Program-made: the position numbers and the translations under genes | Source of the DNA: Octopus sinensis | Taxonomy: Eukaryota | Assembly (NCBI RefSeq): GCF_006345805.1 | Contig: NW_021833262.1 | Location: 1-64,000, forward strand | Length of the DNA: 64,000 nucleotides | Reading direction: 5' to 3' | Part shown: in pieces, positions 355 through 64,000 of the stretch | Layout: each line of letters opens with the position of its first letter | How positions within the stretch are numbered: position 1 is the stretch's first letter | The notes under the pieces: model-generated | The model's database searches: none | Seen by the model: only the letters and a program-made list of their open reading frames with translations | What the model was told of the DNA's origin: nothing

Positions 355-1694
355 TTACAAACCAAACATAGCAATGATTTTTGTTGCAAACTTTTTAAAG
401 TTTTTAAACTTTCCAGGAAGATATGAAAAGAAAGCAGGTATTCCAACCTCCAAATATTTAGCTTTAAGTATAGAATCTGATTGGATTTCCAATAGTTCCA
501 TTTGTAAACTTTCATCTGCATTGGAAACATTAAAAGAAAATGGTGATGCGAATAATGAAAATTGTTGTTCAAAAAACGAAAAATCGTTAAATCTTTCTTG
601 AAATTCCTTTAACAACGATTCTAGTTGTCTTTCATACTGAGAAAAATTCATTACATTATGTGCATCAACAGTACTCCTGAGCTCTTTGCACGTAGGAAAA
701 TGAGATAAATCTTCATTTAATAGCTGAAACTTCCATAATTTGATTTTCGAAATAAAACACTTGATATGATCTGACAACTGAGTTATGAGCTTGTCTTTGC
801 CCTGCAATTATAAATTAAGGTCGTTCATATGTGTGGTAATATCCACTGCCAAATCTTTGATCCAAGATTGACTTTTCATTTCGTCTGTGTTTTGCCCTTT
901 CATCTCCATAAATAAAATTATTTCCAATATCAACAAATAAAATTTTGCACAGCTCGCAATTTAGCGGCAACCCCAGCATGTCGTCCAACCATATTCGGAG
1001 CACCATCAGTGCATAAACATACAAGCTTCTTCAAATCAAACCCATATTCAAAGAAAATTTGTAGTAGTTTTACAAAGATATCTTTACTTGTAGTAGTATC
1101 GTGCATTAGTACCAGTTCGAGAAATTCTTCATAAATATTAAAATCTGAATCACAGGCTCTAAAAAAGATTGCTAATTGTGCAATTCCAACGACGTCGACT
1201 GTTTCATCGATTGCAATTGAAAAATATTCGAATTTTAACAAATCAGACTTTAATTGGTGTTTCAAATTCAATGCCATTTCATTAATGTGTTCAGCAAATC
1301 ACCATCACAATATGATTTTCCATTTACTGCAAGCATTCTGCTGATTTCATAGCTTGCAGTGACTAATGCAGTACTTCGATTATGATTTTTGTGAAATGAG
1401 TTTGTAACGCAGATAAATTTTTTGCAATTCATTTAGCTTTGAAACACGCATTGGACCTTCTTGGTTAATAAGCAACTTAATACCTTCGAAATAATTGTAT
1501 GATAGATGATTAGATTGATAATGCCTCTTTAGGTTGTATTCTTTCGGTATAGCGATAAACTTGTTACATATCAAACAATGTATTTTTCCATCAACCATTG
1601 TGCAAAAATAGAGAAGTTCCGATTTATCTTGAAACACTCTCCGTTCATCTTTCAAGGAGCGTTTCTTTTTTATTCCAGAAGAACCACGTGACAT
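355..1694 (-). pseudogene. SPIN/GTF2IRD2-like hAT transposase, frameshifted and internally deleted
   Basis: Motifs RRVFQDK..CLIC..KEYNLKRHY, SIAIDETVD, CTDGAPNMVG and QGKDKLI..FQERF.DF in separate ORF fragments. Putative 27-nt intron at 1457-1483. Confidence 0.9.
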
Positions 1695-1975
1695 TAACAA
1701 ACACGATTTAAAAATACAATTAAAAATTTTAATTAAATGTAAAAAAATAAAAAATAATTTTTTGCATTGTATAGCCCAGCGGTTCTCAACCTTTTTTAGA
1801 CTGGGGACCACTTTTGCACTATAAAATTTTGTGGGGACCACCTTAAATAAAATAAACATTTTTTGGTATTAGCGCACAATTTTTGGCCTCGTCAGGGCCA
1901 GGTTTAGACATGTTCGAATATTTATTATAAAAATAACATGAACATTATCAAAATAACAGAAAATTTAATAGTAAT

Positions 1976-3836
1976 TTAGTGAGATTTCTGATCTTGTTTG
2001 CTCAGAATAATTTTACTTATATCAGGCTCTATGTTCGACAAAGCTACTCGCATATCATCTTGTACCCGTAGTCTATTTCTATATTTTGTTTTTAGAAAAG
2101 TCAGACACGACATCGCCATTTCACAGTGATAAGTAGTGGGGAATGCAAGTATTGATTCCAATGCAGTTTTACTCAAAATGGGGAATTCTTTCGCCATCTG
2201 ACACCTAACAATAAAAAGTAATTATTAATGAGAATACCAAAAATCTAATAATGAAGTACATTTGAAAATAATCTGAGCAGACTGATTACATTGAAGTTCA
2301 ATCAAGCTCTGCTGAAAATTGAGTTCCTGATATTCTTTAAATGAGGTCAAGAAAGGTTAACGATCCAGTTTGGAATTGGGTCTTCAACAGGAAAATAATC
2401 ATCAAATTTTGTCTTGAGATTTTCCAGATGTTTGATTATCAGACTTAGAAGAACATTATCCGGTGGGTTGTGTCCGAGATGATATTCAAGCATTGGGAAC
2501 ATTGATGTTATTCCTTTTTTTATTTTCATTATCCACAATAATAACTTTTTTTAAAAGCCATTATTATTTGATTGACCTCGACAATTGATATATAAAGACC
2601 TTTAAATAAATTAATAAAAATTTTACCCTGCATTGACAAATTAAACTCATTTAAAATGTTTAAAAAATCGGCAAGATAATACATTTTCGATTTAAAAGTA
2701 AAATCATCAAATTGATCGGCCCAATCATGCTGCATATTATCACGCAAAAACAAAGAGATCGCAGGGGAAAGTTCACAAATTCTCGAAAGGATTTTCCCTC
2801 TTGAAAGCCACCTAATTTCAGAATGATAAAGTAGTATAGAATGATCACTTCCTAACTCTTCACAAAGAGTTTGGAAAATTCGATGATTAAGTGGTCGAGA
2901 TCGAATATAGTTTATCACTTTTACAATGGTGTTTAGTGTTTCTCTTAACGACGAACACATAGTTTTTGAACAAAGTGCATATTTGTGCAATGCACAATGT
3001 CTTGTAACAATATCAGGAACCAAATCCTTAATACGAGTAACAAGTCCAGATTGATGACCAATCATCACAGGTGCACCATCAGTACATATAGATCCAACTT
3101 TATCCCATTGGATTTTATTCGTCTTCATAAAATTGTCAAAAATATTAAAGATGTCCTCTCCACGAGTGTGTCCATCCATCTCCAAACAAAATAAAAACTC
3201 ATCAATAATATTCTCATCATCAACAAAGCGAACATAGGACACAAGCTGACAGACGTTAGAAATGTCAGTTGACTCGTCCAATTGAATACTTATTCTGCAT
3301 TTACTTTTATTGATTCTTTCAATTAATTGCTTCAGGATATCAGATGACAATTCTGAAATTCTACGGGAAACTGAATCATTGGATAATGGTATGTCCTTAA
3401 GTTTGGTAACTGCATCCGGACCAAACAAAATTCGAGCCATTTCAAGAGCCGCTGGTTTGATTAACTTTTCACCAGAATTATGTGCAGCTTTGTTTTTTGC
3501 GATAATCATTGAGACCTATTTGTTTTGGATATAAATTAAAATTACAGCATATGATGCTTCTAATCTCGGTTTATCTTGAGATTTATTAAACCACTCAAGC
3601 TTTGGCTGTGAATCAAACTTCGTTCTTTTGACTTTAAAATATTCATGTGAGGAAGAATTTTCTAGGTGTACAGACTCTTTGTGGCGCCTAAGTTGAAAAG
3701 ATTTCAGTGAATTGTTTCCCAAAATTTTATGGCAAATCATGCATTTTGCCTTTATTTCATTATTTGGGACAATGAATTTAGTAAATCCAAATTGTACGTA
3801 AGAATCCGACCAAAGACGACGATTCTTGTTAACCAT
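1976..3836 (-). pseudogene. ZBED5/Buster-like transposase with three micro-introns and at least one frameshift
   Basis: BED-like CMIC..LRRH, IQLDESTD, CTDGAPVM, HCALH, RWLSRG and TTYHCE motifs. GT-AG introns at 3516-3545, 2600-2626 and 2205-2237 restore family-like sequence. Confidence 0.9.
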
Positions 3837-3869
3837 AACTAGAATGATAAACCACGCTAATCAAATCAG

Positions 3870-4122
3870 ATTAATTTCAATGTTTTTGATTTATACTTAA
3901 TTGTACAATTAGTTTGAAATTTAATATATTGTTATTTTTCGAAAATTCCAGGGGACCACTAAAAATTTTCTGGGGACCACGATTGAGAACCGCTTGATTA
4001 ATTTCAATGTTTTTGATTTATACTTAATTGTACAATTAGTTTTAACTTTAATATATTTTTATTTTTCGAAAATTCCTGGGGACCACTAAAAATTTTCTGG
4101 GGACCACGGTTGAGAACCGCTG
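3870..4122. repeat. Tandem duplication (~126 bp x2) of the inner hAT terminus including the TIR
   Basis: 3870-3996 and 3997-4122 are near-identical. The first copy ends GATTGAGAACCGCTTG, the second GGTTGAGAACCGCTG. Confidence 0.9.
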
Positions 4123-4758
4123 GTATAGCCATTAAATCAGACCGCACTTATGTTTGGCAAAGTACGCTGAGGGCCGCACCTATGTCTTTCGAGGGCCACA
4201 TATTTGACACCCCTGATCTAAAGCAAATCTAATTATAGAGAAATTTTTGCTTTAGGGCATTAAATAAATTTTTCAAGGAAATAATAAAATTTAATTAATT
4301 TCTTTTTTGACTCTCAGGGACAAATAATTCATTTGATTATGATTTGGGATGGAGTCGTCATGAAGTTCTCCGAAAATTATATTGATAACTTATCTATTGG
4401 AGAAGCAAAGAGGACGCACATCCAATCAGTTACGCTGAAAATGACTCTTAAGAGTATGCTAATTGAGCAAAAATGGGATGAAGGTATCTGATAAAGAGTA
4501 TGATTCTATTTCTGATCGGTTTGTTGAGATATCATGTAGTGGTAGAGACGACCCAATGATTTCTGAAGAAGACACATTGATAAAATAAGATGTGATGATT
4601 TTGAGTAAAAGGCAATGTGAGATAAGCTCTTCTTCTAAAAAAAGAGAGTGGATACTAACGACTTGGAGTGCAGGTACACTTAATCAGATTTAAAAATATT
4701 TTTCATAAAATAAAGAATACTTTAGAAAATTAGTTATTCGGGCTTTAATATAGAAGGT

Positions 4759-4833
4759 TCAAGCATTGATGTTGACCCTCCAAACATTAGTGTTGACGCT
4801 TCAAGCATTAGGTTAAAGCTTCAAAAATTAGCG
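4759..4833. repeat. Degenerate 21-bp tandem repeat, ~3.5 units
   Basis: Units TCAAGCATTGATGTTGACCCT / CCAAACATTAGTGTTGACGCT / TCAAGCATTAGGTTAAAGCT. Confidence 0.6.
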
Positions 4834-5701
4834 TTTTTTAGGAAATCAAAACATTTTTACTAAATCAAAGTAGCTATTTATTAGTTGTTACTTTCTTCTC
4901 GGCAAGGGAAATATATCTGAGCATTTTAAGTTAAAAAGATTCATGATTATTAATAGTGATTTAATTCATTTTTCAGTAATGACATTTTTTAACTCTAATT
5001 TAATGTTGACATTGACAGAAATAACAAGATGCTTTCATACAGAAAATATACTTTCTATGGATTCAAGAAAGAAGAATATACTGGTAAATATTCGGAATGA
5101 CTTTAGTTAATCTCTTAATTATAAATAATTTATTTGAAATATCATAATTTTAACTGCAACTTTTTTAAAGTTTTATTAGACATTGAATATGAAATTGAGT
5201 TGTTTAAAATTGGTAATAACTTGAGTTCTACCAGTCTTCTACAGTCTTTGTAGAAGAAATCTTTGTAGGGTTGTTTTTTTCTCTTTGTAAAGTTTTGTTT
5301 TTCAACTTTGGAATCTTTGTAGGCAGTATATTGAAATTCCTGTTAAATTAGATTATTGTTTCTAACAATTTATTTAATTTGTCCTATTTTGAATTTATTA
5401 ATAATTTATTATTAAAGCCAAACAAGACTGATTATTGTTAGTAAATTTATTTAAGCATTCTAAAACTTAATAATCATCCCAATCTACCAGTAATTTTTTG
5501 TCAATTGAATCGACATCAGTTAGAAGCTCCCTCTTTTTCTTCTAAATTACATATTAATTAACTAATACTTATATCTTCTGGCGACTTTTACTGCTGAACA
5601 AATAATGGATAGTGTTATTAATGTGCTTCCGGTAAAAAATAATGAAGTATAGATTATATGACGATGTTCAAAAAACTAAAATAAACTCTAAACATATAAA
5701 A

Positions 5702-6352
5702 TCAAACCCAGAGGCCGAATTTGTCGCTGAAAGATAAGTTTTCACCTATAGATTTTATTTTCTTCGTAGATTTGTGAAAATATGGATAATCAGAGGCATA
5801 ATTTTTTTGTATATCCGGATGACGAGAAGTATAATATTCATTCATGTTCAGGTCATTAGAATTAAAATATTCATCCATATTCAACTCATTGGAGTTATAA
5901 TATTCATTCATATTCAGGTCATTAGAGTTATAAAATTCATCCATATTCAACTTATTGGAGTCATAACATTCATCCATATTCAGCTCATTGGAGTCATAAT
6001 ATTCATCTATATTTAGCTCATCTAAGTCAGAATATTCATCCATATTCAGGTCATCGGAGTTATAACATTCATCCATATTCAGCTCATTGGAGTCATAATA
6101 TTCATCTATATTTAGCTCATCTAAGTTAGAATATTCATCCATATTCAGGTCATCGGAGTTATAACATTCAAACATATTCAGGTCATCGGAGTAATAACAT
6201 TCATCCATATTCAGCTCATTGGAGTCAGAAAATTCACAGAGCTCCGGTATATGTGGAGTTTCGAAATCGTAAGATATTTCATTAAACTGTTCTTCATGCA
6301 CTTTATTATCTTTTGTGGATTTAAATTTTGTTTTTTCTTTTAAATAGGTCAA
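5702..6352 (-). CDS. Exon of an orphan acidic protein with 11-aa Asn/Asp/Glu/Tyr repeats; probably part of a larger multi-exon gene
   Basis: 216-codon open frame with repeats of the type NSDDLNMDEYS / DSNELNMDECY. Coding-like segments on the same strand flank it. No homology recognised. Confidence 0.55.
   Translation of the reverse strand: MTYLKEKTKFKSTKDNKVHEEQFNEISYDFETPHIPELCEFSDSNELNMDECYYSDDLNMFECYNSDDLNMDEYSNLDELNIDEYYDSNELNMDECYNSDDLNMDEYSDLDELNIDEYYDSNELNMDECYDSNKLNMDEFYNSNDLNMNEYYNSNELNMDEYFNSNDLNMNEYYTSRHPDIQKNYASDYPYFHKSTKKIKSIGENLSFSDKFGLWV
5831..6226. repeat. 33-bp tandem repeat x12 with a 99-bp higher-order duplication
   Basis: Consensus ATAA(C/T)ATTCATCCATATTCAG(C/G)TCAT(T/C)GGAGT(C/T). 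Units 5-7 nearly equal units 8-10. No spacers. Confidence 0.95.
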
Positions 6353-6849
6353 CTAATGAGGCCAATACCGATTTGATCTAATTTTGCAATTTCAGCTATT
6401 GCTTGATCAATGGTTAGTTCAAATTCACTTATGTCTGAATCATAATACTAATATTTTATCAATTATTTATTAAACTTTTGGAATGATTTGGGTTTTCAGT
6501 GTTTTCAAGAAATCCAAAGCTGAAGATAGTTCTAGGGTATATGTCAAAGTTTTTCCCCCGTTTTTAAGATCGATGTCGACGTCCCTTGTACGTGCAAGAA
6601 AAAACAAAATTGAAAAAATCTAGGTGTTAGAAAAAGTGAAACACCAAGAAAATCATTGTATTAATTATTCACGATTGATCTATATTTTATTTCTTTTTAG
6701 AATTTAAGGTTATATTATTTTAAAAAATTTTACATAATTATTAAAAAATTAAAATATAATAATTTAATTGTTGTTTTCATTCACAATATAAATTAAGATA
6801 AAAAGATTGGATATTTTATTTTGATGAAACATAAAAAGTTAATAAATTG

Positions 6850-7100
6850 ATACTTTTTCATCTGCTAGCAGCAATTACAAACTTGTTGTTTGCACGACTT
6901 ATACTTAACAGAATACACGAAAAACTTAAATGTACTGCCCACCGTGATACGGTAAGACAAAGGCTTTCCACTAATCGACGATATTGTACAACTCTGAGAA
7001 ATTGCATTGTATCGACGAAAATCAAAACGGTGTATTATATTTATATAGTTCTATGTAAATTTCATTTGTGTTCAAAAGCTTCTTTGACTGGCAATTGACA
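6850..7100 (+). mobile_element. Degenerate RTE-like LINE reverse transcriptase fragment
   Basis: LLFARLILNRIHEKL resembles the RT domain 1-2 region of RTE-type LINEs. Confidence 0.5.
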
Positions 7101-7850: not shown

Positions 7851-7877
7851 TTTGTTAATGTATTTGTTTATATAGCA

Positions 7878-16001: not shown

Positions 16002-16411
16002 CTAATAAATTTGAATCGTGTACCAATACTGAGTTAGCAGATTACAGGTCGAACTTTCAATTTTAACTTCTTTCAGTCGCCCTGGTAAATAAATCCATGA
16101 AGGAATATTTGAATTATCATATTGTTTTAGTAAAACTGAAAAGCAGAAATTGCATTCTTTAACAACTTGCCGAATGATCTGTCTTCTCAATTTAAAAAAT
16201 TTTCGCCTATATAAGGCTTTCAGAGAATTATGTTGACAATGATTGGCTTCATACATCTCACGTGCAATTATTTTCATCTCTTCTAAGCTCGTGGAAGCAA
16301 TTACGAGCCTGTGTAGGTCGTTTACATTTTTAAGATATATAGTTTCCTCTCTTTAATTAGGAAAGTTTCTGCTTTCTTTGTGAGTTGATACTTCTTATGT
16401 TTTCGAAGATC
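16002..16411 (-). mobile_element. Ginger-like integrase N-terminal fragment (HHCC zinc region), interrupted by a CRE insertion
   Basis: KKAETF..LVIAS..EEMKII..HCQHN..RRQIIRQVVKECNFC aligns by eye with the integrase at 39815-40200. The frame continues beyond 16863 once the CRE is removed. Confidence 0.75.
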
Positions 16412-18091: not shown

Positions 18092-18173
18092 TACCAGCAG
18101 TGGGATTCGAACCCACGAGGACAATGTCCATTTGATCTTGAGTCAAACGCCTTAACCACTCGGCCATACTGGC
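18092..18173 (-). tRNA. tRNA-Leu(CAA)
   Basis: 82-nt cloverleaf with long variable arm, TGGCCGAGTGG A box, GTTCGAATCC B box and CAA anticodon. T5 terminator immediately downstream. Confidence 0.95.
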
Positions 18174-19739: not shown

Positions 19740-22700
19740 TTAATAAACAAATTCCTCTCTGTTGGAATGACAGAGAGGACAGGATTGCCTCTTTTTAATT
19801 TCTCTCCTATCGGCGCAATGTTTACACATGGTACATTGCCAATATGACTCAATGCTTATCGGTCTTCCTGTAATATAGCACACGGGTTTCATCATATCTT
19901 CGGTTCTAATTATAACACAAGTATTTTTACTACATATCAGTTGTATCAGAATTGAGAATTATCTTTCCCTTTTCGCTAATAACTCGATAAAAAATTTAAT
20001 ACCTAGAAAATATTTTAATTGCTAAATTTTTATAATTAGCTTGGTTTGGTCCAGATTTTTCAAGAAAAGTAAATTCTCGGGAACATATTTTGAAGCGATT
20101 TGTGAAACAAGCACATAAAGCTAAAATAATTTATTAGTTTTTTAACCAATAATGGAATGAATATTTTCATATCCAAGAAAATTCTCATAACTTAAAAGTC
20201 GATAGGAACACCAAAAAGCATTTTCATATTTCCCTACAAAATATATATTTGGGAATAACCTTGTCGGAAAAAATTATTCGCCAACATCAAAAAATGATAT
20301 GCCTCTGCACCAGTCCATGGATTATAATCTACTTCATTGCCTGCCATCCTACTATTTTCTTCATCCAAACTTTCAATAATTCGAGCCTTGAAATTTTTTT
20401 ATCAAAATTAATTACCGATTTTTGTTCATTGAATAAGAACCCAGCAAGAACATAAAGTTTTTTAATAGTGGTTAATGAACGACAGTTTTGTCGATATTTT
20501 TCTGTAAAATCTAGGACAAATTTGACAGCCTCTTGATAAATTCCCCCTTCTTTACATAAACTTATAGCTTCAAACAACTGTCCAGAATTTACAAGAAAGT
20601 TGACGTTCTTGGATAATAACGATTTAATATCCACTAAATTTGATTGTTTTGCTAAATTATATGCATATTTCCACAAATTTCCACTGATGCAAACAGAAAT
20701 GGCTTTATCAAAATCTTGGAGCTTTTGGTATATTTCGACCGACTGCAAATACATTCCACTTTTTTGAAATATATCTGCAATCTTCAAAAGAGAATTTTTA
20801 TCATTGGATAGTTCATTTGAATATTTTTTTAGACCTTCAAAGTCTTGAATTGAATAATAACAATCGATTATCCGAGAGTTATCTTTTGCCATTTCTAAAT
20901 AATAAATGGCCTCCTTCCATTTACGATGATCCGCATAATGATTACCAACAATGTGATTAATTTCAGGCATATTCTTATTAAATGTTTCGTCCGAGATATT
21001 TTGTAATTTAAGATAATCTCCGATCAGTTTCCATTGGTTAATTGCCAAATCCTTCCGATTTATAGAAAGATAAATATTTTCCGCCTCTTTATAATTTTTG
21101 AACAAAGTCATTACTTTTGCTAATACTATTTGTTCGTCCTGTATACCAAATATATATTTACTTTAATATTTTTTAGTTCTTTTATAAATTGGATTTTCGG
21201 ATAATTTTTGCAGACTGTATATGCTAGTTCAGCAATTTCCAAATTTAAGCCTTTTAACGATGCCTCGCCTAGTAAGTTCCTTCAAATAATATTAGCTTAT
21301 AATTTATACCACAATGAGTCATGATAATTATCCATAATATACGTTTTTGCAGTTTCATAGTTATTCGATTCAATTAAAGATTTTACGATTTTTATACTCT
21401 GTGCTCAAATTTACATACAAGTACTTTTAGTTCATAAAAATTAATAATATTATCATTTGGGTAATCTGGAAGAATGTAAAGACGTTCAAAATTAATTGTT
21501 TTGACTCGCAAGTCAACAAATTCGCTTATAAATCCAGTCGAATCGAATACTTCCTATAGATGAATTTAACAAATGTGTAACCTCGGTTTCTCCGTTTCTA
21601 AGAATGTATAACTTAGATCGATCCATAACTGCTATTAGTTCCGAGTTGTCCTGTTGGTTAAAACCAAGCATTACTTTTGCCCATCTAACATCCCAAACAT
21701 CAGTTCGTGTAGATACATTAGTTGGCAGTAATGTATTTTTATCATTAGTATCAATGATTGACAATGTTCCGACCGAGTCAATAATAGCAAGCTTCCTAAA
21801 TTTAATATTTAATCAGAATATAACTGTAAATTCATATTTAGTTTTAATAAAGAAGGTACTCCAGATATTTTTAACTTTCTCAATATTGTCAAATTTTTTA
21901 CTTCGTACGAAATAATTTCGCCATTTCTTCTTCCCTTATGCAATCAGAATAAAAATATTACAAGAAAAAGATTTTCTGACAAACAGACCGCGGATATTCC
22001 ATTTTTTGGAATTTTGTGTAGGCTATGTAAGACATCTCTTACCTCAACAATAGAGTCGCCAACAACATATAATCTTATAATATAAGATGGAATTACAACT
22101 TTTCAATTTGTTTTTCTCTGAGATTTAGTTCTTGTATTGCATCAAGTCTTTCATTTGATTTTCGATACTCCCAAATATATAGAACATTTTCCGATGCAAT
22201 CAGAAGATACGTATTATTCATTTCACAAAACAAAGGGTGGAAATTTACTGTTCTGGAATCAACTGGATTGCCAATGGAATTATAAATTGTAACAATATGC
22301 TATAATGTAAGAATTTCGTCTACCTCAAGTGTATTTTCATTTTTTGAAACGATACAACAGTTTTGCTTATAAGATGCAATAAATTCAAGATTCTTGACAA
22401 GCTTTTTTATAATCTGTAAAATAAACAGACTAATAAATCAAACAATTTTTGAGGTTAAATTCCAAAATCTGACAATATACGAAAACGAATATGGCAAAGG
22501 GTGTGCATATACAACCGAGTCATCGCATTGGCACCACTTTAATGTCAATAAAATATACATTGTATTCATTTTTAACAGCTATAAAATATATTTCTTTGTC
22601 AATTGCGGCAGCAAGAATTGAATTATCCTCATTCCAACAAAGAGAATTTAAATTTCCATCTTTTAATTTAATTGAATTTTTATGCTAATCTTTAATTTAG

Positions 22701-23805
22701 TTTATTTTACTTTTCCGTCAAGAGAATAAAAGTTGATTATATTTACTATTTTATTAGCGTTTGTATCTAAAAACGTTCCCCCAATTGCTATCACAGTTCC
22801 ACACGTGTTCCACTTTGTACATAATATTGCCATCTCTGTTTTAATAATAATTCCCTCTGTGATTTTATTATTTATGTTTTCCAAACCTTTATCCCATTCG
22901 TTCTTCAATAATCTGCATATTCCGTTATTCGTACAAATTGCTAATGTCGGACAATTTTCATATCTCAGTCCATTATCTCCGGTATACCAATCAACCGTTG
23001 ATATTTCGGAATCTAATGCATTTGGATTATCAAGTAAAAGTTCAATGTCTTCCTACATTCTATGTTTTTACAAAAATAAACCAATTTTTTTCCAAGACGA
23101 TCGAATATGACAATTTGAGAGTTTTTGAGAAAAACAAAAATTGAATTTTTATCTGGAAACCACTTTAATATTATATTATTGAGAAGAACCTGAATTGACA
23201 CAATATTTTTATAATGAGAGTTACTCCAAATGGGAACCCCTTCGCTTGTAAGTACGGTAATTTGATCTAAATTAAAAAACTATTTTTATAAACTTTCTGA
23301 AATGATACAAATTTGTTGTCCATTCATATTCCATTTTATATCTAGAACGTTTTGAAAATTATTATTGTTTATAAATTCTTCTTTTAAATAATCTATAAAT
23401 ATTATTCAATACTAAACCTCCGAAATATTTCCAAATGATTACTAGTCCTTTATTATCGGCGGATATCAATTTATGTGTCTTGCTAGACCATTCAAGGCAT
23501 ATAACATCATCTATATTAAAAATTAAAAATATTAAAACCTCTATGAATTTGATTTACATTTAGAAAAAATAATTGCCATGTGTCATTGGATTCGTTAAAC
23601 CCTAAAACAAGAATAAATCTCAATATTTTTATTTACCATGTAAATCAAATCGAACTATATTCAATAATCCCTGTTTTCCACCACAAGCTAATACTCCAGA
23701 AGAGTGATTCCATGAAGTGCATAGAAATGCTTCTTTATTAAAAGAAGCCATCTTTATTAATATTTTTAAACAAAATAATACTTTTTTAAATAGAAACGAA
23801 CGCAT
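19740..23805 (-). CDS. WDR35: WD repeat protein 35 / IFT121 (IFT-A), many micro-introns
   Basis: N-terminus MRSFLFKK..CTSWNH.SGVLACGGKQGLL, VWDVRWA, TPR region HWKEAIYY..IKKLYVLAG and C-terminal CYITGRPI..WQCTMCKH..CPLCH. Confidence 0.9.
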
Positions 23806-24310
23806 ACTAGTGTCACCTAGTAACAATTTTTAATTGAAATGACAAAAAATGAGAATAAATAATAACTTTAATAAACTTAATTTAGAATCAGTTTTTGTTC
23901 TTTTTAAAAGCCCGTTCCTGGTTTTTTTCAATTTTTGTTAGGGCAGTTGATTTTAGTTGCATTATTTTTGGTTTACAGAGAAGATAATGAGAAGGCAGAC
24001 AAGAGATTATCTATCATTTCAAGATAATTATGACTTTAATACCTCTCCTGTTTTTGGTATAATAAATTTATCTACTGAAAAATTATCAACCATCACTTGA
24101 TACAAATAAATTCAATTTTTAAAATTAACTAAACTAATAATTTAAAAATAATAATTATTTTTCTAACCAAACAATTTGGCCCTTGTAGTTTACACCAACT
24201 AGAGATTAACAAGATATTTTAGTCAGTTTTCACCATAAGTATGTCCTACGTAGCCTACCTACATTGAACGTTATACACAAGGATTTAATTATTTTAAAGA
24301 ACATCAGTGT

Positions 24311-29699: not shown

Positions 29700-31100
29700 T
29701 TCCATGTTTATCAAATTCAGTTTAAAATAGTCCAATGCGCGAAAATAATCTACAATATCCATATTTTCATTTTTGTCGGTCTCAATTACATTTGTCATCA
29801 ATCCTATCATTGCGAGAAACTTTCGAAATTGTATCATCTTGAAACATTTCAATTAATTCGTTTTTTCACTGTAGCCGTATTCAATAAAATCCTGCTCAGT
29901 CAATGGGTCGTTAATTTGTAATTTTTGTTTAGACTAGGTTTGGTTATCCAATTATGTCGTGTCCGACCGTTGGAGATCCCATAAGCTAATTTTCTCCACT
30001 TATCTCGGTCATTCGCGATTTCGAGAAGTATTGATAAAGGCAATCCCGTGACTAGCTATCGAGTTATCTGTCGGCCGAGACTTCTCTTCCCAGTAATTTT
30101 GCTCAGCATAATGGTTCTTTTCATTGAATTAGAGTGGGCGACATGTCTAAAGAACGCCTATTTGTGTTTTACGATTTTTCCTCATTTTTTGCATGCTTAC
30201 TTGAAACAATTTTAAATTGTTTTGGTTCTACATTTTTATGAAAAAATGAGTGAAAAATATTGAATTCATTAATATAACAGACTTGTATGCACTAAAAGAG
30301 TCTACGCCAACTTCAATTTTGTTAATAATTTAATTGAACTATAATTTGTTAAAATTTCCTTCAACAAATTTAATGACTCCTCTGTCTAGTGGCCGCAAAA
30401 GTGAAATTGATCTCGCGTGTAAAAAATAAAACTTCAATTCTCTTCAGAGTAAATGCTATTTTATGTGACGGGAAACGAACAATAACCAACAAAATGTTTT
30501 TTTTCTTATCTATTTTGAGTTCCCATTTAATTGATTAAAAAAATTTTGTATCCATCCATGCTCTGTTTGAATTTGTATATGCGAGATAAATTTCAATATT
30601 ATTTTCTTTGAAACATCCGGGTTTCTTTTATTTCTCTATCATTAATAGATGTCGGATCCGTTTGTATTAGTGCATAGCATAATTGAAAATCTGTCTTTTA
30701 CCATTTTGAAACCATTTTTTGGCTTTGTGCATACACTTTGTGAAGGAATTGTTTTGTAAAAAATTTATGTTTCCTCAGCGTTGTGTAAATTTTCAATTTC
30801 ATATTTTAGATTTTATCTTTGATCAAAAAAAATCATTAATAAATTTTTCCTTCGGTTTGCAATTTTCTTAATTTTTGATCATGTCATTAAAATTTTTCCA
30901 GCCAGCCTTCAAATTAAACCAAAAAACACAAAAATCTGCACTTGCTTTATAACTGAATAATCCCTCCATTTCTGCAAAAAAGTGCAGACCTATTGACTAT
31001 CGAGTGGAAAAAATGATTACCAAACACAGGCATGGAATCAAAATTACTAAAGAGGAGAGAAATTCAGGCAGTATCCTCATAATTTAAGAAAATTATTTTT
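29700..31100 (-). mobile_element. Highly decayed pogo/Tigger transposase copy
   Basis: YKAS.GWLEKF, IYNAEET*IFYKTIPS, KDRFSIMLCTN.NGSD and RAWMD motifs, collinear with the copy at 36244-38162. Confidence 0.8.
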
Positions 31101-36243: not shown

Positions 36244-38162
36244 CAGTTTACCCTCTATTGCTCGCCAATTCTATTGCTCGCCATTTCTATAACTCGCCAC
36301 TTTTTTGGAAAAAATGCCATTTTTACTAAGGAAATTCCATTGCTCGCCAAATTCTCTCACTCGCCACGTTCTAGTATTAAAAAATTAAAATTTATTATTA
36401 AAAAAATAATTTTTTCAAATATTTATACCGCGTGTTTTTTTTGTAACATGAGGAAGTGCTCAAGATTATCTTATGATCAAAAAAGAGAAATTATAAATTA
36501 TCTTATTGATAATTCTTCTCTAAGTCTAAGGCACGCCTTAGAGAAATTTTTTCGTCGCGTTTCAAAAAATCAATTTCGAGACATGCAATTAACGATCTTA
36601 AATTGAACAAACAGAAGATTCTTGGAATTAATCCAATTTATGGGAGAAGTTCTCGTTTTTCGAAACTTAGATATTCAGCAATTGATTCTGAAATCATTGC
36701 CTGGATAGATTACATGGAATCTATTGGAGTTTGCCTCAATGATGAGATAATTTTGTCGAAAGCAACTGAAATTGCTGCGTTAAACGGTCTCTTCGAATTT
36801 AAAGCCAGTATAGGATGGCTTGAAAAGTTCAAAAAAGGCACAATGTAAAACTAAGAATTTTTCATGGTGAATTGGGATATACTGTGGATGAGTTCAAAGA
36901 CCAAATCGAAGACTTTAAAAAAATTATCTCTTCTAAAATAAATGAATATGGTTCAGAAAATGTTTATAATGCCGACGAAACCGGCGTATTTTACAAGACC
37001 ATTCCATCAAAAAGTGTCTGCAGGAAACGCCGATCAGGACAAAAATTACTTAAAGATAGGTTTAACATTTTTAGCCAATTTTCAGATTTTCATTAATGCT
37101 TTGCGCAAATATGACTGGATCCGATAAAAGAACCCCTTTGATGATCGGGCAGTTTAAGAAACCAAGGTGTTTTAAAAACTTGAACGTTGATGAATATTTA
37201 CAATACCGGAATTCTTCAAAGGCTTGGATGAACATGGAAATATTTAACGAATGGTTGTATAATTGGAACAAGACTCTCAAACAAAAACAAAAAAAGATAC
37301 TTTTGGTTGTAGACCATTGTCCTTCGCATAGAACAACAATCGAATTAAGTATGATAGAAGTTTTATATTTACCAAAAAACACGACTACTGTGGATCAAGG
37401 AATCATTTGATCATTCAAATCTCATTTCAACAAATTTAAATTTAAACATATAATTGAACAAATAAACTACGGTGACGCAACTATTGAATGCTATAAAAAA
37501 TTAACCCTGAAAGATGCAGTCTTATTTTCTTATCTAGCCTGGAAAGATGTGTCAGTGGATACAATATCAAAATGTTTTCAGCACGCCAAATGGGAAAACA
37601 GAATTGAAGAACCTATTATGGGAGACCATAAAATAAAAAATTTCGAACAAATTATAGAAAAATTAATGATCACAGATCCCATAAAAGAGGAGGAGTTTAT
37701 AGACTTTACGTACTCTGAAAATGACGAACTTCATGAATTTGTTCAAAACAATAACTATGAAAATAACGATGAAAATGCAATTTTAGACAGTTCAATTACT
37801 GAAGATTGTGAAAGAAACAACTGTATTACACATCGAGATGCGATAAAATGTATTTCGGACCTCAAAAAATATTTTTCACATGACGATAATTTTGATGTGA
37901 ATATGCTAGAAAGTTTATTAAAAATGCAAAAAAATATAGAGAAAAGATCATACAAAAAAACTATAAATGATTACTTTACTTAAAATTTTGGTTTTTTAAA
38001 TAAATGTTTCGGCTATTTATTTAAATGTTTAGATAGTTAAAAATTATAGAAATTTTTTGTTAATAGAAAATAGGATATTGATTATTTCTCTTACTCGCCA
38101 AATTCTCTTAGTCGCCAATTTTGGCTTGGTCCCAAAAATGGCGAGCAATAGAGGGAAGACTG
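36244..38162 (+). mobile_element. pogo/Tigger-like DNA transposon with decayed DDD transposase
   Basis: 24-bp TIRs CAGT(TTA/CTT)CCCTCTATTGCTCGCCA and TA TSD. HTH-CENPB GWLEKF, NADETG, KKPRCF, WMN and LVVDH motifs. 26-nt intron at 37060-37085; frameshifts. Confidence 0.93.
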
Positions 38163-39814: not shown

Positions 39815-41153
39815 GTGTTACTTATGTCGCGTTCCTTTGTAAGAGATATGGATGAGTATCGATTGCTGGAAAAAGTTTTAAATGGACAAAATATCGAAAA
39901 TCAATCAAGACAAAAAGTTTACTGCCTTAAAAAGAAAGCTGAAAAGTTCATGTTAATCAATGGAAGAATATACCTAAAACAGCCGTGTGGAAATCACAAA
40001 TTAGTGATTTCGACGGACAACGTTGACGAGATGAAATTGGTGGCTAGCCAAATTCGTTTCGCATTGTGGACATAACACTCTCGAGAACATGTGCCATGAA
40101 AGATATTTCACTGTAAAACGACAAATAATCCGAAAAATTGTTGCCGATTGTGAAATTTGCAAATTTTCAACTCCCTTGAAACTAGGGGATGAAGAAAATC
40201 ACGTGATTGCCAATCGTCCCAATGAAAAATTCCAGATGGATTTAATTGATCTGAAGAGGTATCAATTTTTTGTATTATATATTAAAGATTTAAACAAACA
40301 AATGAAACTTTCGCATGGCTTTTAACGGTTATTGACGTCTACTCGAAGTTTGCATTCACTCGAAACATAAAAGCGGAATTGACGTTGCTGAAAATCTCAA
40401 AAAAATTTTTCTACGTTTTGGACCGTGTCAATATTTGCAATCGGATAATGGAACTGAATTCAAAAATCCACATGTGACTGCCTTGTGTGAATGTTTCAAC
40501 ATTCAACAGATACACAGTAGGCCAAACAATCCGAGAAGTCAAGGCATCATCGAGCGTTTTAACCAAACGGTTACGAGGTCGCTATCTAAAATGATGGCTA
40601 ATGATGAAGATAAGTGTTGGACGAAGTATATAGATGAAGCTGTTTATTTTTATAATTTAAGTAAACATTCTTCTACTGGTTTTCTTAAAATTATTCATTT
40701 TTAGGAGATTCCCCATTTCATAGATATCGTGGGATTAGAGGATCGAACAACTTCATTCCCGAAAAAGACACTGAGATGAAGAGTGACAATTCAGATGGTT
40801 AGTTAAAATTCGCAATATATAGAATAGATTCAAAAAACATAGAATTTTCTTTCAATTTTCCGCCCACCGATGTTACTTCTCCATATTTCCAAAAAATGAA
40901 CAGGAGAATGGGTGTTCATCGGTCAAAATATTCATTTAAAATTGGAGATAAGGTAAACTCAAATTATTCTAAATTGTAGATAAGAATTCAAAAGGACTAT
41001 GGTACCAATCCTTCACTTGCACTCAAAAAATTTGAAAGTCCATACGGAGAAGTTTGTACAATAAGTGAAATCCTCCCGCATAATATGGTCAGAGTTGAAA
41101 TGGACGATGGAACTACTAAGAAGACACTTATGAAAAGAATTAAAAAAATTTAA
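39815..41153 (+). pseudogene. Ginger-like DDE integrase with four micro-introns and two frameshifts
   Basis: HHCC zinc region, QMDLID, QSDNGTEF, QGIIERFN and FKIGDK C-terminus. Introns at 40259-40287, 40679-40704, 40798-40827 and 40953-40979. No RT, RNase H or LTR nearby. Termini not resolved. Confidence 0.88.
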
Positions 41154-41968: not shown

Positions 41969-42040
41969 TGCCCAAGGTCGGAATTGAACCAACGACCTTT
42001 AGATCTTCAGTCTAACGCTCTCCCACTGAGCTACTTGGGC
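41969..42040 (-). tRNA. tRNA-Phe(GAA)
   Basis: 72-nt cloverleaf with acceptor stem GCCCAAG/CTTGGGC and anticodon loop CTGAAGA. T-rich terminator downstream. Confidence 0.96.
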
Positions 42041-52400: not shown

Positions 52401-52443
52401 AAGACTTGCAAATCGACGTTTTATTTTGCCATGTAAAGTGGCA

Positions 52444-58069: not shown

Positions 58070-58570
58070 TTGATTTTTTTATATTTTGATATTTTTACAC
58101 TTATTAAATAAATTTATTTAGAAAATGCTTGAAACTAGTTGTCAAAAAGTCAAATTCTTTTTGTTATTAAACAACAACTTTAATAGCATAAAGATTTAAA
58201 AATTCATTAAAAGTTTAGATTTGTATAGAAAACTGAATAAGCATTATTTTCGAAAAGCAAAAATAAAATAGTAAATTAACTGTAAATTTAATATTTACTA
58301 ACATTTTATTAGCAAAAGTTTGTTTTTAATGCTTTGTTCGATCCTTTGAAATACCATTAATACAGTCACTTTTAAATCTAATCGGTTAGAAGCGTGTCAA
58401 AGAAGAAATCCTGAAATATTAATAGAAATTAAAATATTTCAAAAATCAATTTCTAGCAAAAAATTAAAAAATCAAATAACACAAAACAGTACTTCGATAG
58501 TGGCATATTAATTAAAAAATGAATAATATTTGAAAACATTTATTACTAGAAAGAAAAGGCAAATAAATAA

Positions 58571-59915
58571 TCAAGACGGATTCAATTTAGAAACATTAGA
58601 TCCATTCGGATCACCAGGATCGGAGGTAGCAACAGATTCTGTGGGACGAGTCCACTTGTACACCCCGGATTTAACAACTGGATGATAGAACTGACAATTG
58701 TTTTTATTTGTACACTTAATCCCAAATTGACACATCTACGAATTTATTTTTCCAAAATAAACTTTATTCCGACTAAATGGCTTACGAAACCTCTTCCCTC
58801 CCCTTAGCATGTAACCCCTCACAGGGTTAACTAAAACATTATTCCATAAAACAAAAACAGTTCTGTCTTGAAGGAGGTTTCAAGTTCTTTGTTGTGTGAG
58901 TATAGGGACAATTTGGACGAGAACAGTTAGCATCAAACATACAATTCGGGTGAATGTAAATGCACTTATCTCCAAATGTACAATTAGGAAACGTTCTACC
59001 AGAAATCAAAAACTCAAATCTTCGAACCGACATAGAACGTTTGGATGATGGAATTGACATTGATCTCCGTTTGCACAACTCGGCCAGAATTTACAACGTT
59101 CTTTTATTTTGGTCACTTTTTGGTCATTTGTCTCCATTTGCTCAACGGGGATATAACTTTCTGCAAACTGGTCGACTGGCTGACTTTTAATAGCATTGTT
59201 AAAGGTAACACAAACAGGACGATTATCCTTATTTTCAGCACATGTACCTACAAACAAAATTGCACTTGAAAATTTAAACTTATCACTGTAATTAATTAGT
59301 AAATATAGTTAATTAAAAAGAGTAAAATACAAACTGTCGAAATCGGCCCGATTGATAACAATGCGTTTAAGCACAGATTGATCGGAGGTGTTCGCTTGGG
59401 GAACATTCGTTGATATTTCATCCATAAATCTATCAATACATGCCCTCTCATTGTCAGGAGAGTTTGAATTCTATGCTAATATAATGACAGAAGCAACATC
59501 AAGGTGGGATCTTCATCTGAATAGTACTCTCCTTCCGATAGAAATACGTCATAAGTGTCCCCTCGCGTCTCAGCCTTCGTCTCAAAGTCTGATTTGTTCT
59601 CCGAATCTGTTTTAAGTTTGTCCATAATATCAGCAAGCCTTTAATTAGTTAAGCATCTTTTACCAATCAACAAATTTTTCAGTGTTTCGTCCAAGGAAAA
59701 GTTTCAAGTCTTCCGTAATAGAACTCCTGGGCTTTCCGTGAGTTACTAGAACGACAATATATTCAGGCAATTCATCGTCTAATTATTAATTTGAATATAA
59801 CAAGGAAAACCTACATAAGCGTTTATTTCTATTAGTTTGTCCTTTATATAAGTCTAGTCGTTATTTATAGATATTATACTTTGATTTTGTCTCTAATCTC
59901 GGGAGAGATTTTCAT
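58571..59915 (-). CDS. ZC3H14: Zinc finger CCCH protein 14 (Nab2 homologue)
   Basis: N-terminal IKDKLIEINAY..ELPEYIVVLV..EDLKLFLG..FVDW and tandem CCCH fingers (ERCKFWPSC..HHP; FPNCTFGDKCIYIHPNC). Confidence 0.92.
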
Positions 59916-60710
59916 AATGATAAATCGGATCTAAAAATAACCAAGACAAGCACTACACTAGAGTGTTAAGAAATTATTTATTTATTAATTTCATTAAAAA
60001 TATACTTCTATTATAATTAACATTATATTTATTATATAACCTGCTTAGTATTTGAAATCCAAATCACAGCGTTTTAATTTTCAAAAACTTTAGAAAAATA
60101 TAAACGTGGTGACAAAACAAACAAGTTTAAATATAAAGGCTTGACTGAAACTTAACATTAATAATACATCAATATTTTTAAATTATTTTGCTTAAAATTG
60201 AATTATATACAGTCAACTGTTTCTATGAAGGCTCTGGAGCCGGTGGGAATCAAAGCCCTTACCCAAATTTTCAATTACTCAGTAAACAAAAATGAAATTC
60301 CGTCATTATGGAAAAAATCACTCATACACCCGATACCGAAAAAGGACAAATCTCTGAACGATCCACTTTGACGATCTAATAATCGCAGCAAAACATCAAG
60401 ATCACAAAGAAGCTACGCGGAAAGTTCAGGAGACCATTAACCTTATGAACCCATGGTTTCTCAAAAACCGAATGAAGATATCACCTGGGAAATCAAGCAC
60501 TACGATTATCTCTTCATACAGGAAACATACAGCACTGGACCCAAAAATAATTTGGGATGGACAACTTATCCCAGTTAAAAGGAATCCTTCAATCCTTGGA
60601 ATTACATTCGACCCATTAATGACGTTTAAAAATCAAGTGGAGTCAGTGATTTCACAAATCCAAAAGAAGATCGGAATTCTCAAAGCTATTGCTATATCTC
60701 CAATATCTTC

Positions 60711-62342
60711 TGTCACCGGTTTTATAGCCCACGGGTTGGATAACCCACCATCGAAAAAACTACCAAAAAAACATAAATATAATCTAAAAATCATCAGAAA
60801 ATATAATTAACTTTAATTTTCTTCTTTTTTATTATTTTTATATTTCTGCCTGTTGCATAAATCACACATCATTCATTTGTGCTTTACATTTTTAAAATAA
60901 ATAAAATTTTATTTATATTTAATTGGAGTCAATAAAATAAGAATTAATTCATTTAAAAAAATCAAATTTTTAATCAAATTTTTTTTAATCTACTTAAATG
61001 CACGTTTGATACTGTTTCTCCATTATCTTTATTAATGGTACACGTAGTTTCAAATTTTTCTGAAACTGTGTACTTATTTATATCCAGTTTGTCATATAAT
61101 GGGTATCTACGGTTACCAGGGTTATCATCCCTGTCGTGTTTCAGCAGCACTGTATTTCCAATTTCAATGTCTTCTGCGTCATATTTCCACTTACGACGTT
61201 TTTTCATTTTCTCTCCAGCTTTAACAAGGTTTTCATGCACTTGTTTCTCAGTTCTTTTATCGTCATTTTCAAAATAATTCGAATTTGACTCATCACTTAG
61301 TTCTGGATTTGTTCCGTCGAACATTAACAATGCATTTATTTGATCTTCTGTTCTCCTTGAACTCTTTCCCATTGTCTGTTTGCAAGATAAACGGGGTCGG
61401 ATTGAGAAGAAAATCTTTTTTAACTTTCTTGTTTTTTTATCAAAATATTTATTTCTTAAAAGAAAACAGAGAGAAAAGAGAGTTAACAAGAGGACTTCCC
61501 CGCCTCGTAGATGGAGAAACAGTTTCCACGTACAATAGCAAGGGAAATCCTCTGAAAGAGCCATCCAGACTCACGCGTGTCGTTTCTCTTGCGAGAAATC
61601 AGACGACCCAGCTTTTTGAGGAAAATGAGTGACCTGTCACCGATTACGCCTGAGGTATCCACGGCGATCGGGGTAAACAGATAGCGTTCCGAGAGATTGG
61701 TGTACTTTGAAATCTTTAATTCTTCTGCTCTGCTCTACTCTTGTTATTTCTTCAGCTGATTTCGTTTTGCAAGTTTTACCACTGCAAATTTGGAAAAGGA
61801 GTCGATTACAACAACCAACTAAGACTTATTCAAAAAAGACCCATCCATAATTGCTGTTAAGGTTTGAATATCTCCTTAGATCCACTAAATCTACAATCAA
61901 GAATTTTTAACTTTAGCTCACTTTCTTCTAGAGTAAAAAAACGCAGTTTTTTATTTCTGACTTTTATATACGTTTTTTCAGAAAATTTGACGCAAAAACG
62001 ATTTTTAAGCGTCCTGAGCCTTCTCCTTTTCTCTTTATCGTATATAGTAGTGGTGTCATCAAAATTTTTTATTTCATTAAGTTGGTTTGTCGTTAATTTC
62101 AAAAGAACCATATTCTAATTGAACTTTATTGAACAACTCTACTTATTTTCACAGTTTTTAAACTTTATTAATAAAAAGTTATAGTTTTCACGCTAAAATA
62201 TTGAAAAAAAAGAACAATAAATTATTAAAATAATTAAGAAAATCATTTTTTCCAATGAAATTAAATATATGAAAAATATTATTATTATAAAATATGTCAT
62301 TAGGTGGGTTATCCAACCCAGTGGGCTATAAAACCGGTGACA
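60711..62342 (-). mobile_element. Ginger-like DNA transposon, internally deleted
   Basis: ~40-bp TIRs beginning TGTCACCGGTTTTATAGCCCAC with TGT...ACA ends and 5-bp TSD TCTTC. Integrase motifs DLVD, IDSFSKFA, QTDNGKEF. 21-nt intron at 61819-61839. Confidence 0.92.
61434..61738 (-). mobile_element. 5'-truncated CRE copy inserted in the Ginger integrase
   Basis: KYTNLSERYLFTPIAVDTSG..FQRISLAIVRGN. 7-bp TSD TCTTGTT at 61427-61433 and 61739-61745. Confidence 0.88.
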
Positions 62343-63328
62343 TCTTCTAATCCTCATTTTGAGTTATTATACAAACAATATATACTGCCTACAATTGAAC
62401 ACGCATGTGCGTCATGGATCAGCCATTGTTAATATTCGCACAAAACAAACTGGAAGTCTTACAGAACCAGTGCTTACGGATTTTACTGAAACGTGATAAA
62501 ATGACGCCGACTTCGGAATTGAGAAATACACTCAACGTCAAAAAATTAATGGACCATTTTACAGAAAGACAGCACACCTTCTTAACGATGGCAAGATCTA
62601 CCGGAGGTCCCCTTGAAGAGGAGTATCTTGCCTATGAGAAGTGTGCTAGGAAATTTGAAAAAAACCATCTCCCTTTTGACGTTGATTAAGAACTCGAGAC
62701 AAAGAAAAGATAAAAGGAGATGCACTGACACCGGGATCACTTAATTAGACGATTAATATTCTTCTTTCCTGTGTTCCCGGGGTTAAATAATAATATGAAG
62801 ACTCTGGAGATTATCTCGTTTAATGCTTGCCGATCTTGTCTTTTCCTAACATTTAGTCAACGAAAAGCGCTGGAATGCACCTTCTCGGAGGTCCAAAGTG
62901 CCGGAGAAGAGGAGGAAAAGGAAAGAAAGTAAGTGCCATTTTCTGTTCACTTCTAAGACTTTGGGTTTATCACTTGGACGCGATTTACCTAAATGGAAAG
63001 TTGACTTCTTTAAGAAAGCCTATTTTCTGTCGTCAAACAATGCATTAAAATTTATTATATTAAGAATATGCCCCTCTTCAAATATTAGACGTTTTTGATG
63101 AGTTCTTTCCATCCACATTATGAAGACGTAGATTAGGTGGTCTCGCTAGAAATCCAAAAAGAATTTTGTGCACAAAACAGATGTAATACCATTACACTAA
63201 CTCCTATTTATAAAAGAAGTGAGCTTTCCTTTTCTTGACACTTATTTTTGATAAAGTTATTTTTTAATAATACTTGGAGACTTTAAGTTTTTTTAACTAA
63301 CTTTGAAAAAAACTTTGATGTTAAATAT

Positions 63329-64000
63329 TGTCGTAAGTTATAGCGTCCGGGCCAGTTCTAAGTGTCCGGAGTGATAAATCGGATTTATCACTCCAAATCA
63401 TTATGATTTTGGGAATAAATTTTATTTGTGTCGCCTAATTTTGGTTAAATAACGTCCTATACGGGGATACGGATGAAATTATTGGTAAAATGTACCCGCA
63501 TGTTTTTCTGGTAGGCAAAAAAATTGTGCATGGTCATTCGCGTTAGAGAATAAAACATCACAAAGCATCTATAATGCAATTGAGAGTTTATTCCAGACTG
63601 TCGGTCCTCCAATTTATTTTCATTCGGACAATGGAAAGGAATTCCGCAACAAAGAAGTTTCAAAACTTCTTGATGATTGGAAAATAACTCCGATATATGG
63701 AAGACCAAGGCACCCACAATCTCAAGGACAAATAGAAAGATATAACCAAACTCTCAAACGTTGGTTGGGGAAGACTTTGTTCGCAACAGAATCTATAAGG
63801 TGGAGAGAAATTCTACAGAAGGTGGTGTATAACTACAACATAACTTGTCATCGCGCAACTGGAAAGTCACCATTTTTGTTAGTCTCTTTTTATTTACCCA
63901 GTCTATTTTACGGAATAACGGGTTTTAATATTTTGCCATGTGGAGGCGCAGAAGAAGAGATTAACTCAGAATCGGAAGAAACGGAATTATCCTTAGAAGT
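63329..64000 (+). mobile_element. Ginger-like element, left end and integrase core (runs off window)
   Basis: Starts TGTC..TTATAGC, resembling the 60711 TIR. Open frame HSDNGKEF..PRHPQSQGQIERYNQ..YNITCHRATGKSPF to the window end. Putative 24-nt intron at 63878-63901. Confidence 0.85.
63368..63394. repeat. Perfect 27-bp palindrome
   Basis: GGAGTGATAAATC-G-GATTTATCACTCC (13-bp arms). Confidence 0.9.

Follow-up and report, generated by a model that had tools for sequence, protein, structure and literature searches.

Host-sized introns are present in the Drosophila P element and pogo, in Caenorhabditis elegans Tc1 and Tc3 and in maize Ac, whose transposase mRNAs are spliced by the host, and in the P element one retained intron leads to a truncated repressor. 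The introns of Paramecium are about 25 nt long. The transposase open reading frames (ORFs) of the Paramecium Tc1/mariner elements Sardine, Thon and Anchois were annotated with predicted introns (Arnaiz et al. 2012, PMC3464196), and Ginger1 transposase genes contain 0-4 canonical GT-AG introns, their number varying between families (Bao, Kapitonov and Jurka 2010, PMC2836005). In the plant CACTA transposase, according to the available text of PMC4158355, the exon/intron structure evolves between families, with intron loss as the main force. In this work we analysed a stretch of 64,000 nt (the window, whose positions are used throughout), part of the NCBI contig VCDQ01000240.1 (109,897 bp; assembly GCA_006345805.1) deposited under Octopus sinensis, in which hAT, pogo/Tigger and Ginger-like transposase genes are interrupted by very short GT..AG inserts. 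We consider it highly probable that these inserts are genuine U2-type GT-AG introns in transposase genes of cut-and-paste DNA transposons, residing in a genome with introns of about 26 nt that is most probably that of a dicyemid. A first-pass annotation of the window had allowed for introns in some Ginger and hAT elements and regarded animal Buster and Tigger ORFs as usually intronless; a premise that introns are unusual in DNA transposons is too strong, given the cases above, among them Ginger1 and Paramecium (PMC2836005, PMC3464196).

Results

The window is AT-rich (29-39% guanine-cytosine (GC) content). GT..AG segments are frequent in it, and chaining ORFs over all of them over-predicts introns, with 1-nt frameshifts being 'repaired' by false introns (e.g. 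40066-40102, 40348-40373, 36524-36543 and 36808-36827). Because of this, the claimed inserts were evaluated against decoys: profile hidden Markov models were made from outside relatives alone, each GT..AG segment of 18-40 nt in a region was removed singly, and the resulting translation was scored. The claimed insert ranked first in nine of the ten testable regions (4-25 candidates each), gaining 10 to 102 bits over the unspliced translation; the product of 1/n across the nine rank-1 regions was about 1e-10. Two of the chained segments were rejected as introns on other grounds: removal of 40348-40373 would lose conserved residues, and 36524-36543 corresponds to an uninterrupted ORF in P0149, an intact pogo copy that is 97% identical.

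Ten of the eleven GT-AG inserts listed in the first-pass annotation behave as introns, one of them (40798-40827) as a probable case only, and the eleventh, in the element hAT1, was unsupported. Nine had GT..AG ends at the positions originally given. The insert of Ginger B, placed at 61819-61839, is not GT-AG in that register and was corrected to 61819-61840, and the third insert of Ginger A was corrected to 40798-40827. Removal of the inserts produced gapless junctions in the alignments with relatives, and the Pfam matches to DDE_1 and rve crossed the junctions as single stretches. All the inserts are pure additions, with no coding residues lost, and therefore do not represent coding sequence turned into intron. 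If left in, eight of the ten introns would cause a frameshift or add a stop; the other two, hAT2 intron 2 and the Ginger C intron, are stop-free multiples of three.

The yardstick for host introns was provided by the host genes of the window, in particular WDR35/IFT121 (19743-23829, minus strand), modelled with 21 introns of 19-35 nt; the spliced model (residues 8 to 1147) matches human WDR35 (8fgw_A, E=1e-171) from end to end. Forty host introns had a mean of 26.1 nt (standard deviation (sd) 3.3, range 19-35 nt), with one intron per 202 nt of coding sequence. The inserts of the transposons were 22-33 nt long, with a mean of 27.4 nt (sd 2.9) that covers all 11 claimed inserts, including the unsupported one of hAT1, and for which the coordinates of Ginger A intron 3 were off by one base. 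The earlier claim that the inserts have the size of host introns was thus confirmed. GC content was 20.5% in the transposon introns versus 33.9% in the flanking 60 nt, and 23.9% in host introns versus 33.5% in exons. The transposon introns begin with GTA or GTT and end mostly with TAG, AAG or CAG. By their GT-AG ends, length and composition, the ten supported inserts, with the coordinates corrected, fit the micro-intron class of the host. One figure was discarded from this comparison, a count of 0 of 40 host introns being stop-free multiples of three, as the chaining method is blind to such introns.

The pogo/Tigger-type transposon (36244-38162, plus strand) has 29-nt terminal inverted repeats (TIRs), CAGTTTACCCTCTATTGCTCGCCA, and is flanked by TA (TA/CAGT...). 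Its intron (37060-37085, plus strand; 26 nt, GT-AG) shifts the frame when retained and ranked first among 10 candidates (200.3 bits spliced vs. 98.4 unspliced; junction KDR/FSLMLCAN, the slash marking here and below the splice junction), using relatives of 33-47% identity. The spliced product matched DDE_1 (111 bits) in one stretch spanning the junction and HTH_Tnp_Tc5 (49 bits). The TA duplication, the TIRs and these two domains identify a pogo/Tigger (Tc1/mariner-related) element. The copy harbours two 1-nt frameshifts, a 4-codon deletion and one stop. A second copy on VCDQ01010639.1 (L003), 96.9% identical over 1,484 nt, keeps the GT and the AG and is identical at 26 of 26 intron positions, which for pogo speaks against copy-specific decay. 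Another copy, on VCDQ01009738.1 (L002), has intact ends and a 307-nt internal deletion (L002:3467-3468, equivalent to window 36917-37223) that takes out the intron region; it is a typical non-autonomous internal-deletion derivative, indicating that the family was recently mobile. Both contigs carry the pogo family of the window at 97% identity, and in L002 a WD40 gene with micro-introns lies 1 kb away from the pogo element.

Two further pogo sequences are intronless at the homologous site. A fragment of a second pogo family at 30234-30806 (minus strand), with 32% amino acid identity to the window pogo, reads KDRFSIMLC unbroken. A related pogo on VCDQ01012648.1 (L004), 54% identical to that of the window where the two match best and 44% identical in the alignment, is likewise continuous at the KDR/F site; its host may be octopus or dicyemid, so this case carries limited weight. 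In the same contig (L004:2501-5613), the public gene model P0148 fuses an unrelated upstream exon to the pogo transposase over a long intron, and looks like an annotation chimera.

These data bear on the reading of the inserts as copy-specific decay indels whose GT and AG ends arose by chance. Every carrier copy in the window is decayed (stops, 1-nt frameshifts, internal deletions), and suitable GT..AG segments are so common in this DNA that ORF-chaining found false ones. However, the inserts outrank all of the 4-25 candidates per region in nine cases out of ten, the other lesions are 1-nt indels or deletions rather than additions of 22-33 nt, the pogo insert is identical in the second copy, and the low GC content and the narrow length band fit host introns. 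Decay indels are accordingly a very improbable explanation, one that is largely refuted.

The element hAT2 (1777-4122, minus strand) is nested within the 5' part of a second element, hAT1. It has the TIR CAGCGGTTCTCAACC (16/16 match) and an 8-bp target-site duplication (TSD), GTATAGCC, at 1769-1776 and 4123-4130, and it aligns with Buster/ZBED5-like transposases of ~600 amino acids at 37-43% identity and 99-100% coverage. The 8-bp TSD, the short TIRs and the full-length transposase homology define it as a Buster/ZBED5-like hAT. No Pfam match was obtained for hAT2 itself in the library copy used; its relatives have DUF4371, FAM200-ZBED5 and hAT dimerisation domains. Decay affects the C-terminal third, with frameshifts and stops past residue ~410. 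Its three GT-AG introns, all on the minus strand, ranked first. Intron 1 (3516-3545; 30 nt, 17% GC, in-frame stop inside; junction EASYAV/SMIIAK) scored 114.6 bits spliced vs. 99.8 unspliced (rank 1 of 20), intron 2 (2600-2626; 27 nt, 7% GC, in frame and stop-free; junction LSMQG/LYISIV) 59.0 vs. 49.4 bits (rank 1 of 6), and intron 3 (2205-2237; 33 nt, 18% GC, in-frame stops inside; junction LLDFW/CQMAKEFP) 125.7 vs. 108.9 bits (rank 1 of 24). At its 5' end, hAT2 has a tandem pair of its terminal ~120 nt, TIR included (3873-3996 and 4006-4122), with a few mismatches in the inner copy.

The second, distant hAT (hAT1; 202-4215, minus strand) is heavily decayed and 24% identical to hAT2, with the TIR CAGGGGTGTCAAA and the 8-bp TSD ATCTAAAG at 194-201 and 4216-4223; its DUF4371 and zinc-finger matches fall slightly under the Pfam cut-offs. 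It is continuous, with no intron, at all three positions of the hAT2 introns. The intron claimed for it (1457-1483, minus strand; 27 nt, GT-AG, 30% GC, in frame and stop-free) is located past the zinc finger, in a linker that is not conserved, and ranked only fourth of 17 candidates (9.0 vs. 8.7 bits, +0.3). The annotation had described two intron-bearing hATs; hAT2 bears introns as described and the insert of hAT1 is unsupported, so that just one hAT is demonstrably intron-bearing. AG/GT is found at the 3' junction of all four hAT inserts (GT at 1455-1456, 2203-2204, 2598-2599 and 3514-3515, minus strand) versus 2 of 40 host introns; this excess is a post-hoc observation and is not accompanied by a duplication signature.

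The remaining carriers encode Ginger-like integrase transposases (H2C2 + DDE) that are not preceded by reverse transcriptase/RNase H. The label Ginger (Ginger2/Tdd-like) is used here without reference to the motifs YPYY and GPY/F, by which Ginger1 and Ginger2 are told apart. Ginger A (39825-41150, plus strand) is an integrase-only gene (H2C2 + DDE, rve) with its own ATG at 39825, four introns and two 1-nt frameshifts, and it aligns with single-ORF integrase-only relatives of 390-458 amino acids at 36-46% identity and 100% coverage. The closest (42-46%, full length) are P0001, P0002 and P0007, labelled Gag-Pol in the microsporidia Dictyocoela roeselum, D. muelleri and Nosema granulosis, a likeness that may point to transposons passing between parasites, or between parasites and their hosts. 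A TIR search around Ginger A gave nothing convincing, and there is no reverse transcriptase upstream of its integrase, nor any such motif in the window.

The four Ginger A introns are on the plus strand and GT-AG. Intron 1 (40259-40287; 29 nt; junction DLIDLKR/FKQTNE) scored 117.2 bits spliced vs. 82.3 unspliced (rank 1 of 4), intron 2 (40679-40704; 26 nt; junction KHSSTG/DSPF) 108.9 vs. 84.2 bits (rank 1 of 18, the best decoy reaching 103.1), and intron 4 (40953-40979; 27 nt, stop inside; junction KIGDK/IRIQKD) 81.0 vs. 67.4 bits (rank 1 of 20). Intron 3 (40798-40827; 30 nt) lies in a variable linker that gives no homology and falls outside the decoy test; its GT-AG ends, its size and the in-frame stop that its removal eliminates make it a probable intron.

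Ginger B (60711-62342, minus strand) is an internally deleted element with 39-40-nt TIRs beginning TGTCACCGG (TGTCA termini) and a 5-bp TSD, TCTTC, at 60706-60710 and 62343-62347. Its 22-nt GT-AG intron (61819-61840, minus strand; junction NSNYGW/LVVVIDSF) scored 38.8 vs. 18.4 bits (rank 1 of 12). An unrelated, uninterrupted ORF of 198 amino acids inside it (60977-61570, minus strand), containing ...YLFTPIAVDTSGVIGDRSLIFLKKLGRLISRK...LFQRISLAIVRGN... and with no Pfam match, is probably part of another mobile element inserted in Ginger B. Ginger C (63489-64000, plus strand), a third integrase lineage with ~31% identity to Ginger A, continues past the end of the window. Its intron (63878-63901, plus strand; 24 nt, GT-AG, in frame and stop-free) scored 100.3 vs. 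88.8 bits (rank 1 of 25); read through, it would be an 8-residue insert, LLVSFYLP, present in none of ten other aligned integrases (nine outside relatives and Ginger A). As regards the termini typical of Ginger elements (TGTNR, TIRs, 4-5-bp TSD), Ginger B has them all, the TIR of Ginger A was not found, and those of Ginger C are off the window. The statement that the pogo/Tigger and three Ginger-like integrases carry inserts held wherever it was testable, always at decoy rank 1. One more Ginger-like N-terminal fragment (16107-16352, minus strand; 40% identity to residues 49-126 of Ginger A) adjoins host genes. The first-pass annotation had also mentioned fragments of long interspersed elements (LINEs) and CRE elements in which no such inserts could be seen; neither a motif scan nor Pfam scans covering 20 ORFs found a reverse-transcriptase core in the window.

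The carriers might be regarded as domesticated transposase-derived host genes instead of transposons. Ginger A has no detectable TIRs, intron-bearing host genes derived from Ginger elements exist (GIN1/GIN2 and KRBA2; PMC2836005), and the integrase search gave matches named KRBA2. However, TIRs and TSDs delimit hAT1, hAT2, pogo and Ginger B, there are several copies and internal-deletion derivatives, and all reading frames have stops or frameshifts, so that domestication has hardly any probability in its favour.

The positions of the introns are specific to each family. Ginger A, B and C (~31% mutual identity) have zero intron positions in common: the sites of Ginger A are R/F, G/D, the variable linker and K/I, the W/L site of Ginger B is ten residues from the first of them, and the F/S site of Ginger C four residues from the second. 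One outside relative per superfamily has an uninterrupted ORF in genomic DNA (P0027 on a 175-kb ENA contig, P0002 in the Dictyocoela muelleri genome and P0145 on a TARA scaffold). Family-specific positions together with uninterrupted outside relatives favour separate gain: each transposon lineage most likely acquired its introns on its own, once it had split from those relatives.

The opposite reading is that the introns are old: the transposon lineages would already have had them on reaching dicyemids, where they were shortened to host size, the relatives having lost theirs. The relatives are indeed distant (36-46% identity), the closest ones of Ginger A are microsporidian, and microsporidia purge introns. 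Ginger1 elements from elsewhere have 0-4 introns (PMC2836005). On the other hand, there is no common position among Ginger A/B/C, between hAT1 and hAT2, or among two or three pogo families, uninterrupted relatives also occur in two other samples (the ENA assembly contig and the TARA ocean metagenome scaffold), and many independent losses would be required. We regard old introns as improbable.

If the introns were gained separately, one possibility is that micro-introns are being created actively, short AT-rich GT..AG segments often being inserted into transcribed DNA and the transposons recording recent events. This would agree with ten inserts that are all pure additions at family-specific positions, in six lineages and three superfamilies, and with the AG/GT junctions of the four hAT inserts set against the low host frequency. 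However, no trace of a source was detected. A tandem duplication of an AGGT-containing exon segment was rejected, as identity between intron and flank (0.25-0.55 vs. a null of 0.37, every p > 0.06) was no more than chance. An introner-type origin was likewise rejected within the window, where the best matches of each intron elsewhere were no better than those of its shuffled versions and no related copies of any intron sequence exist. Moreover, pogo copies that have already diverged by 3% have the same intron, so no gain was caught in progress. Intron density also argues against active creation: the transposons have one intron for every 300-1500 nt or so of coding sequence, a density 1.5-7 times lower than in host genes. 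The transposons are therefore less, not more, intron-rich than host genes, and the first-pass proposal that this lineage systematically adds introns to its DNA transposons is not borne out by the density comparison it had called for. Its active gain process was not demonstrated either (no source sequence, tandem duplication or repeated intron family could be traced), and we consider ongoing creation doubtful.

The window is also tightly packed with animal genes (an SK potassium channel, WDR35/IFT121, a protein kinase, ribosomal protein S8, a release factor), and these are interrupted by very short introns. Octopus kidneys are the habitat of dicyemids. Introns this short have been reported in animals only for dicyemids and myxobolid myxozoans, according to the available text of PMC13644364, and PMC6736024 gives a mean exon of 198 nt for Dicyema japonicum (Lu et al. 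2019). From introns of ~26 nt, one intron per 202 nt of coding sequence and tight gene packing, as in Dicyema japonicum, we infer that the contig is probably a contaminant from a dicyemid kidney parasite in the octopus assembly. Two tRNA genes are present on the minus strand, tRNA-Leu(CAA) at 18092-18173 and tRNA-Phe(GAA) at 41969-42040, the latter ~0.8 kb downstream of Ginger A. A predicted protein at 5565-6619 (minus strand) contains a long array of degenerate repeats of the NELNMDEYY type and, after it, a hydrophobic tail, with no family match.

Discussion

The inserts of hAT2, pogo and the three Ginger-like elements have the ends, the length and the composition of the host micro-introns, and their removal restores transposase sequence better than that of any other GT..AG segment wherever this could be scored. 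Several facts weigh against reading them as introns gained by transposons of a dicyemid. Splicing is a prediction from DNA. All copies in the window are decayed and none is functional now. Conservation between copies was shown for pogo alone, and no further hAT2 or Ginger copies were retrieved with a concatenated query of read-through ORFs, which gave only distant integrases and no hAT match and was possibly insensitive. The dicyemid identity of the contig is itself deduced from gene structure. Some of the relatives taken as uninterrupted are on short Logan contigs and could be transcripts, three having been checked as DNA. Finally, with outside relatives just 36-46% identical, the timing of the gains is loose and could predate entry into dicyemids.

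In the mechanism that we propose, the host spliceosome would remove the introns from the transposase pre-mRNA, and the past activity of these families would have needed this step; without splicing, most of these elements could not have made transposase. DNA transposons copying as DNA, an acquired intron would be retained with the element. In retroelements, by contrast, introns are lost because these elements go through a spliced RNA. The size of the introns would be set by the narrow optimum of the host spliceosome, and no special machinery for adding introns would be required.

Retention of hAT2 intron 1, of the pogo intron or of Ginger A intron 1 would end the product where the catalytic domain begins or slightly past that point, and would keep the N-terminal DNA-binding part. 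This anatomy permits a P-element-like control by intron retention. The introns may also aid expression, or may shield the elements from silencing of intronless transcripts, a process described for HUSH in humans (available text of PMC8770142). A bolder and tentative idea, which we think probably goes too far, is that dicyemids possess an ongoing supply of micro-introns recorded by six transposon lineages of three superfamilies, each having acquired its own AT-rich GT..AG additions of 22-33 nt since its divergence from uninterrupted relatives, and that, further, if the first intron of every element lies near the start of the catalytic domain, its retention would produce a repressor with DNA binding only, giving a self-limitation like that of the P element. 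If this were true, transposon copies of different ages would constitute a dated series for catching the birth of introns, and its mechanism, in an animal.

If the inserts are introns, as we think, recognition of the shortest intron class known in animals is good enough for selfish elements to rely on, as the transposase would be lost if any of eight of the ten stayed in. Family-specific positions set against uninterrupted relatives also make these elements a convenient site to seek recent intron gain in a genome-reduced lineage. Transposon annotation based on ORFs will miss or fragment such transposases, and an apparent parasite contig under Octopus sinensis may lead to wrong conclusions about horizontal transfer or about the repeats of the octopus.

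Comparison with known systems

Among the described systems, Ginger1 of Hydra and other animals (PMC2836005) resembles the Ginger-like elements of the window in its integrase-like transposase with H2C2 + DDE and its introns and, in the case of Ginger B, in TGTNR termini, TIRs and a short TSD. The introns here, however, are 22-30 nt long, the TSD of Ginger B is 5 bp, as in TDD-4/5, and not the 4-bp CCGG, and Ginger A is closest to integrase-only genes of amphipod microsporidia, with no C-terminal OTU/Ulp1 domain seen. The introns of P, pogo, Tc1/Tc3 and Ac are all more than twice as long as those of the window, and three superfamilies occur here side by side in one 64-kb window. The Paramecium elements are similar in having a host with very short introns and in that the predicted introns must go before the ORFs read through; they differ in their ciliate host, in introns that are predicted in a supplementary annotation only, and in the absence there of a comparison of positions between families. 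In plant CACTA elements the structure of the transposase gene also differs by family, but, in the text available, by loss, whereas the pattern here favours gain.

The dicyemid micro-introns of PMC6736024 and PMC13644364, as far as the available texts go, are of the same length class, and one intron per 202 nt of coding sequence in the window compares with their published 198-nt mean exon. According to the accessible part of PMC6736024, the Dicyema japonicum genome has a repeat content of 49% and LINE-1 ORF2 copies. Term searches of the available text of both papers found no mention of introns in transposons, the former being without any 'transpos' word. Introns in DNA transposons were already known; next to these systems, and with a signal of lineage-specific gain that is suggestive but unproven, the window offers a clear-cut case from an animal whose introns are the shortest on record.

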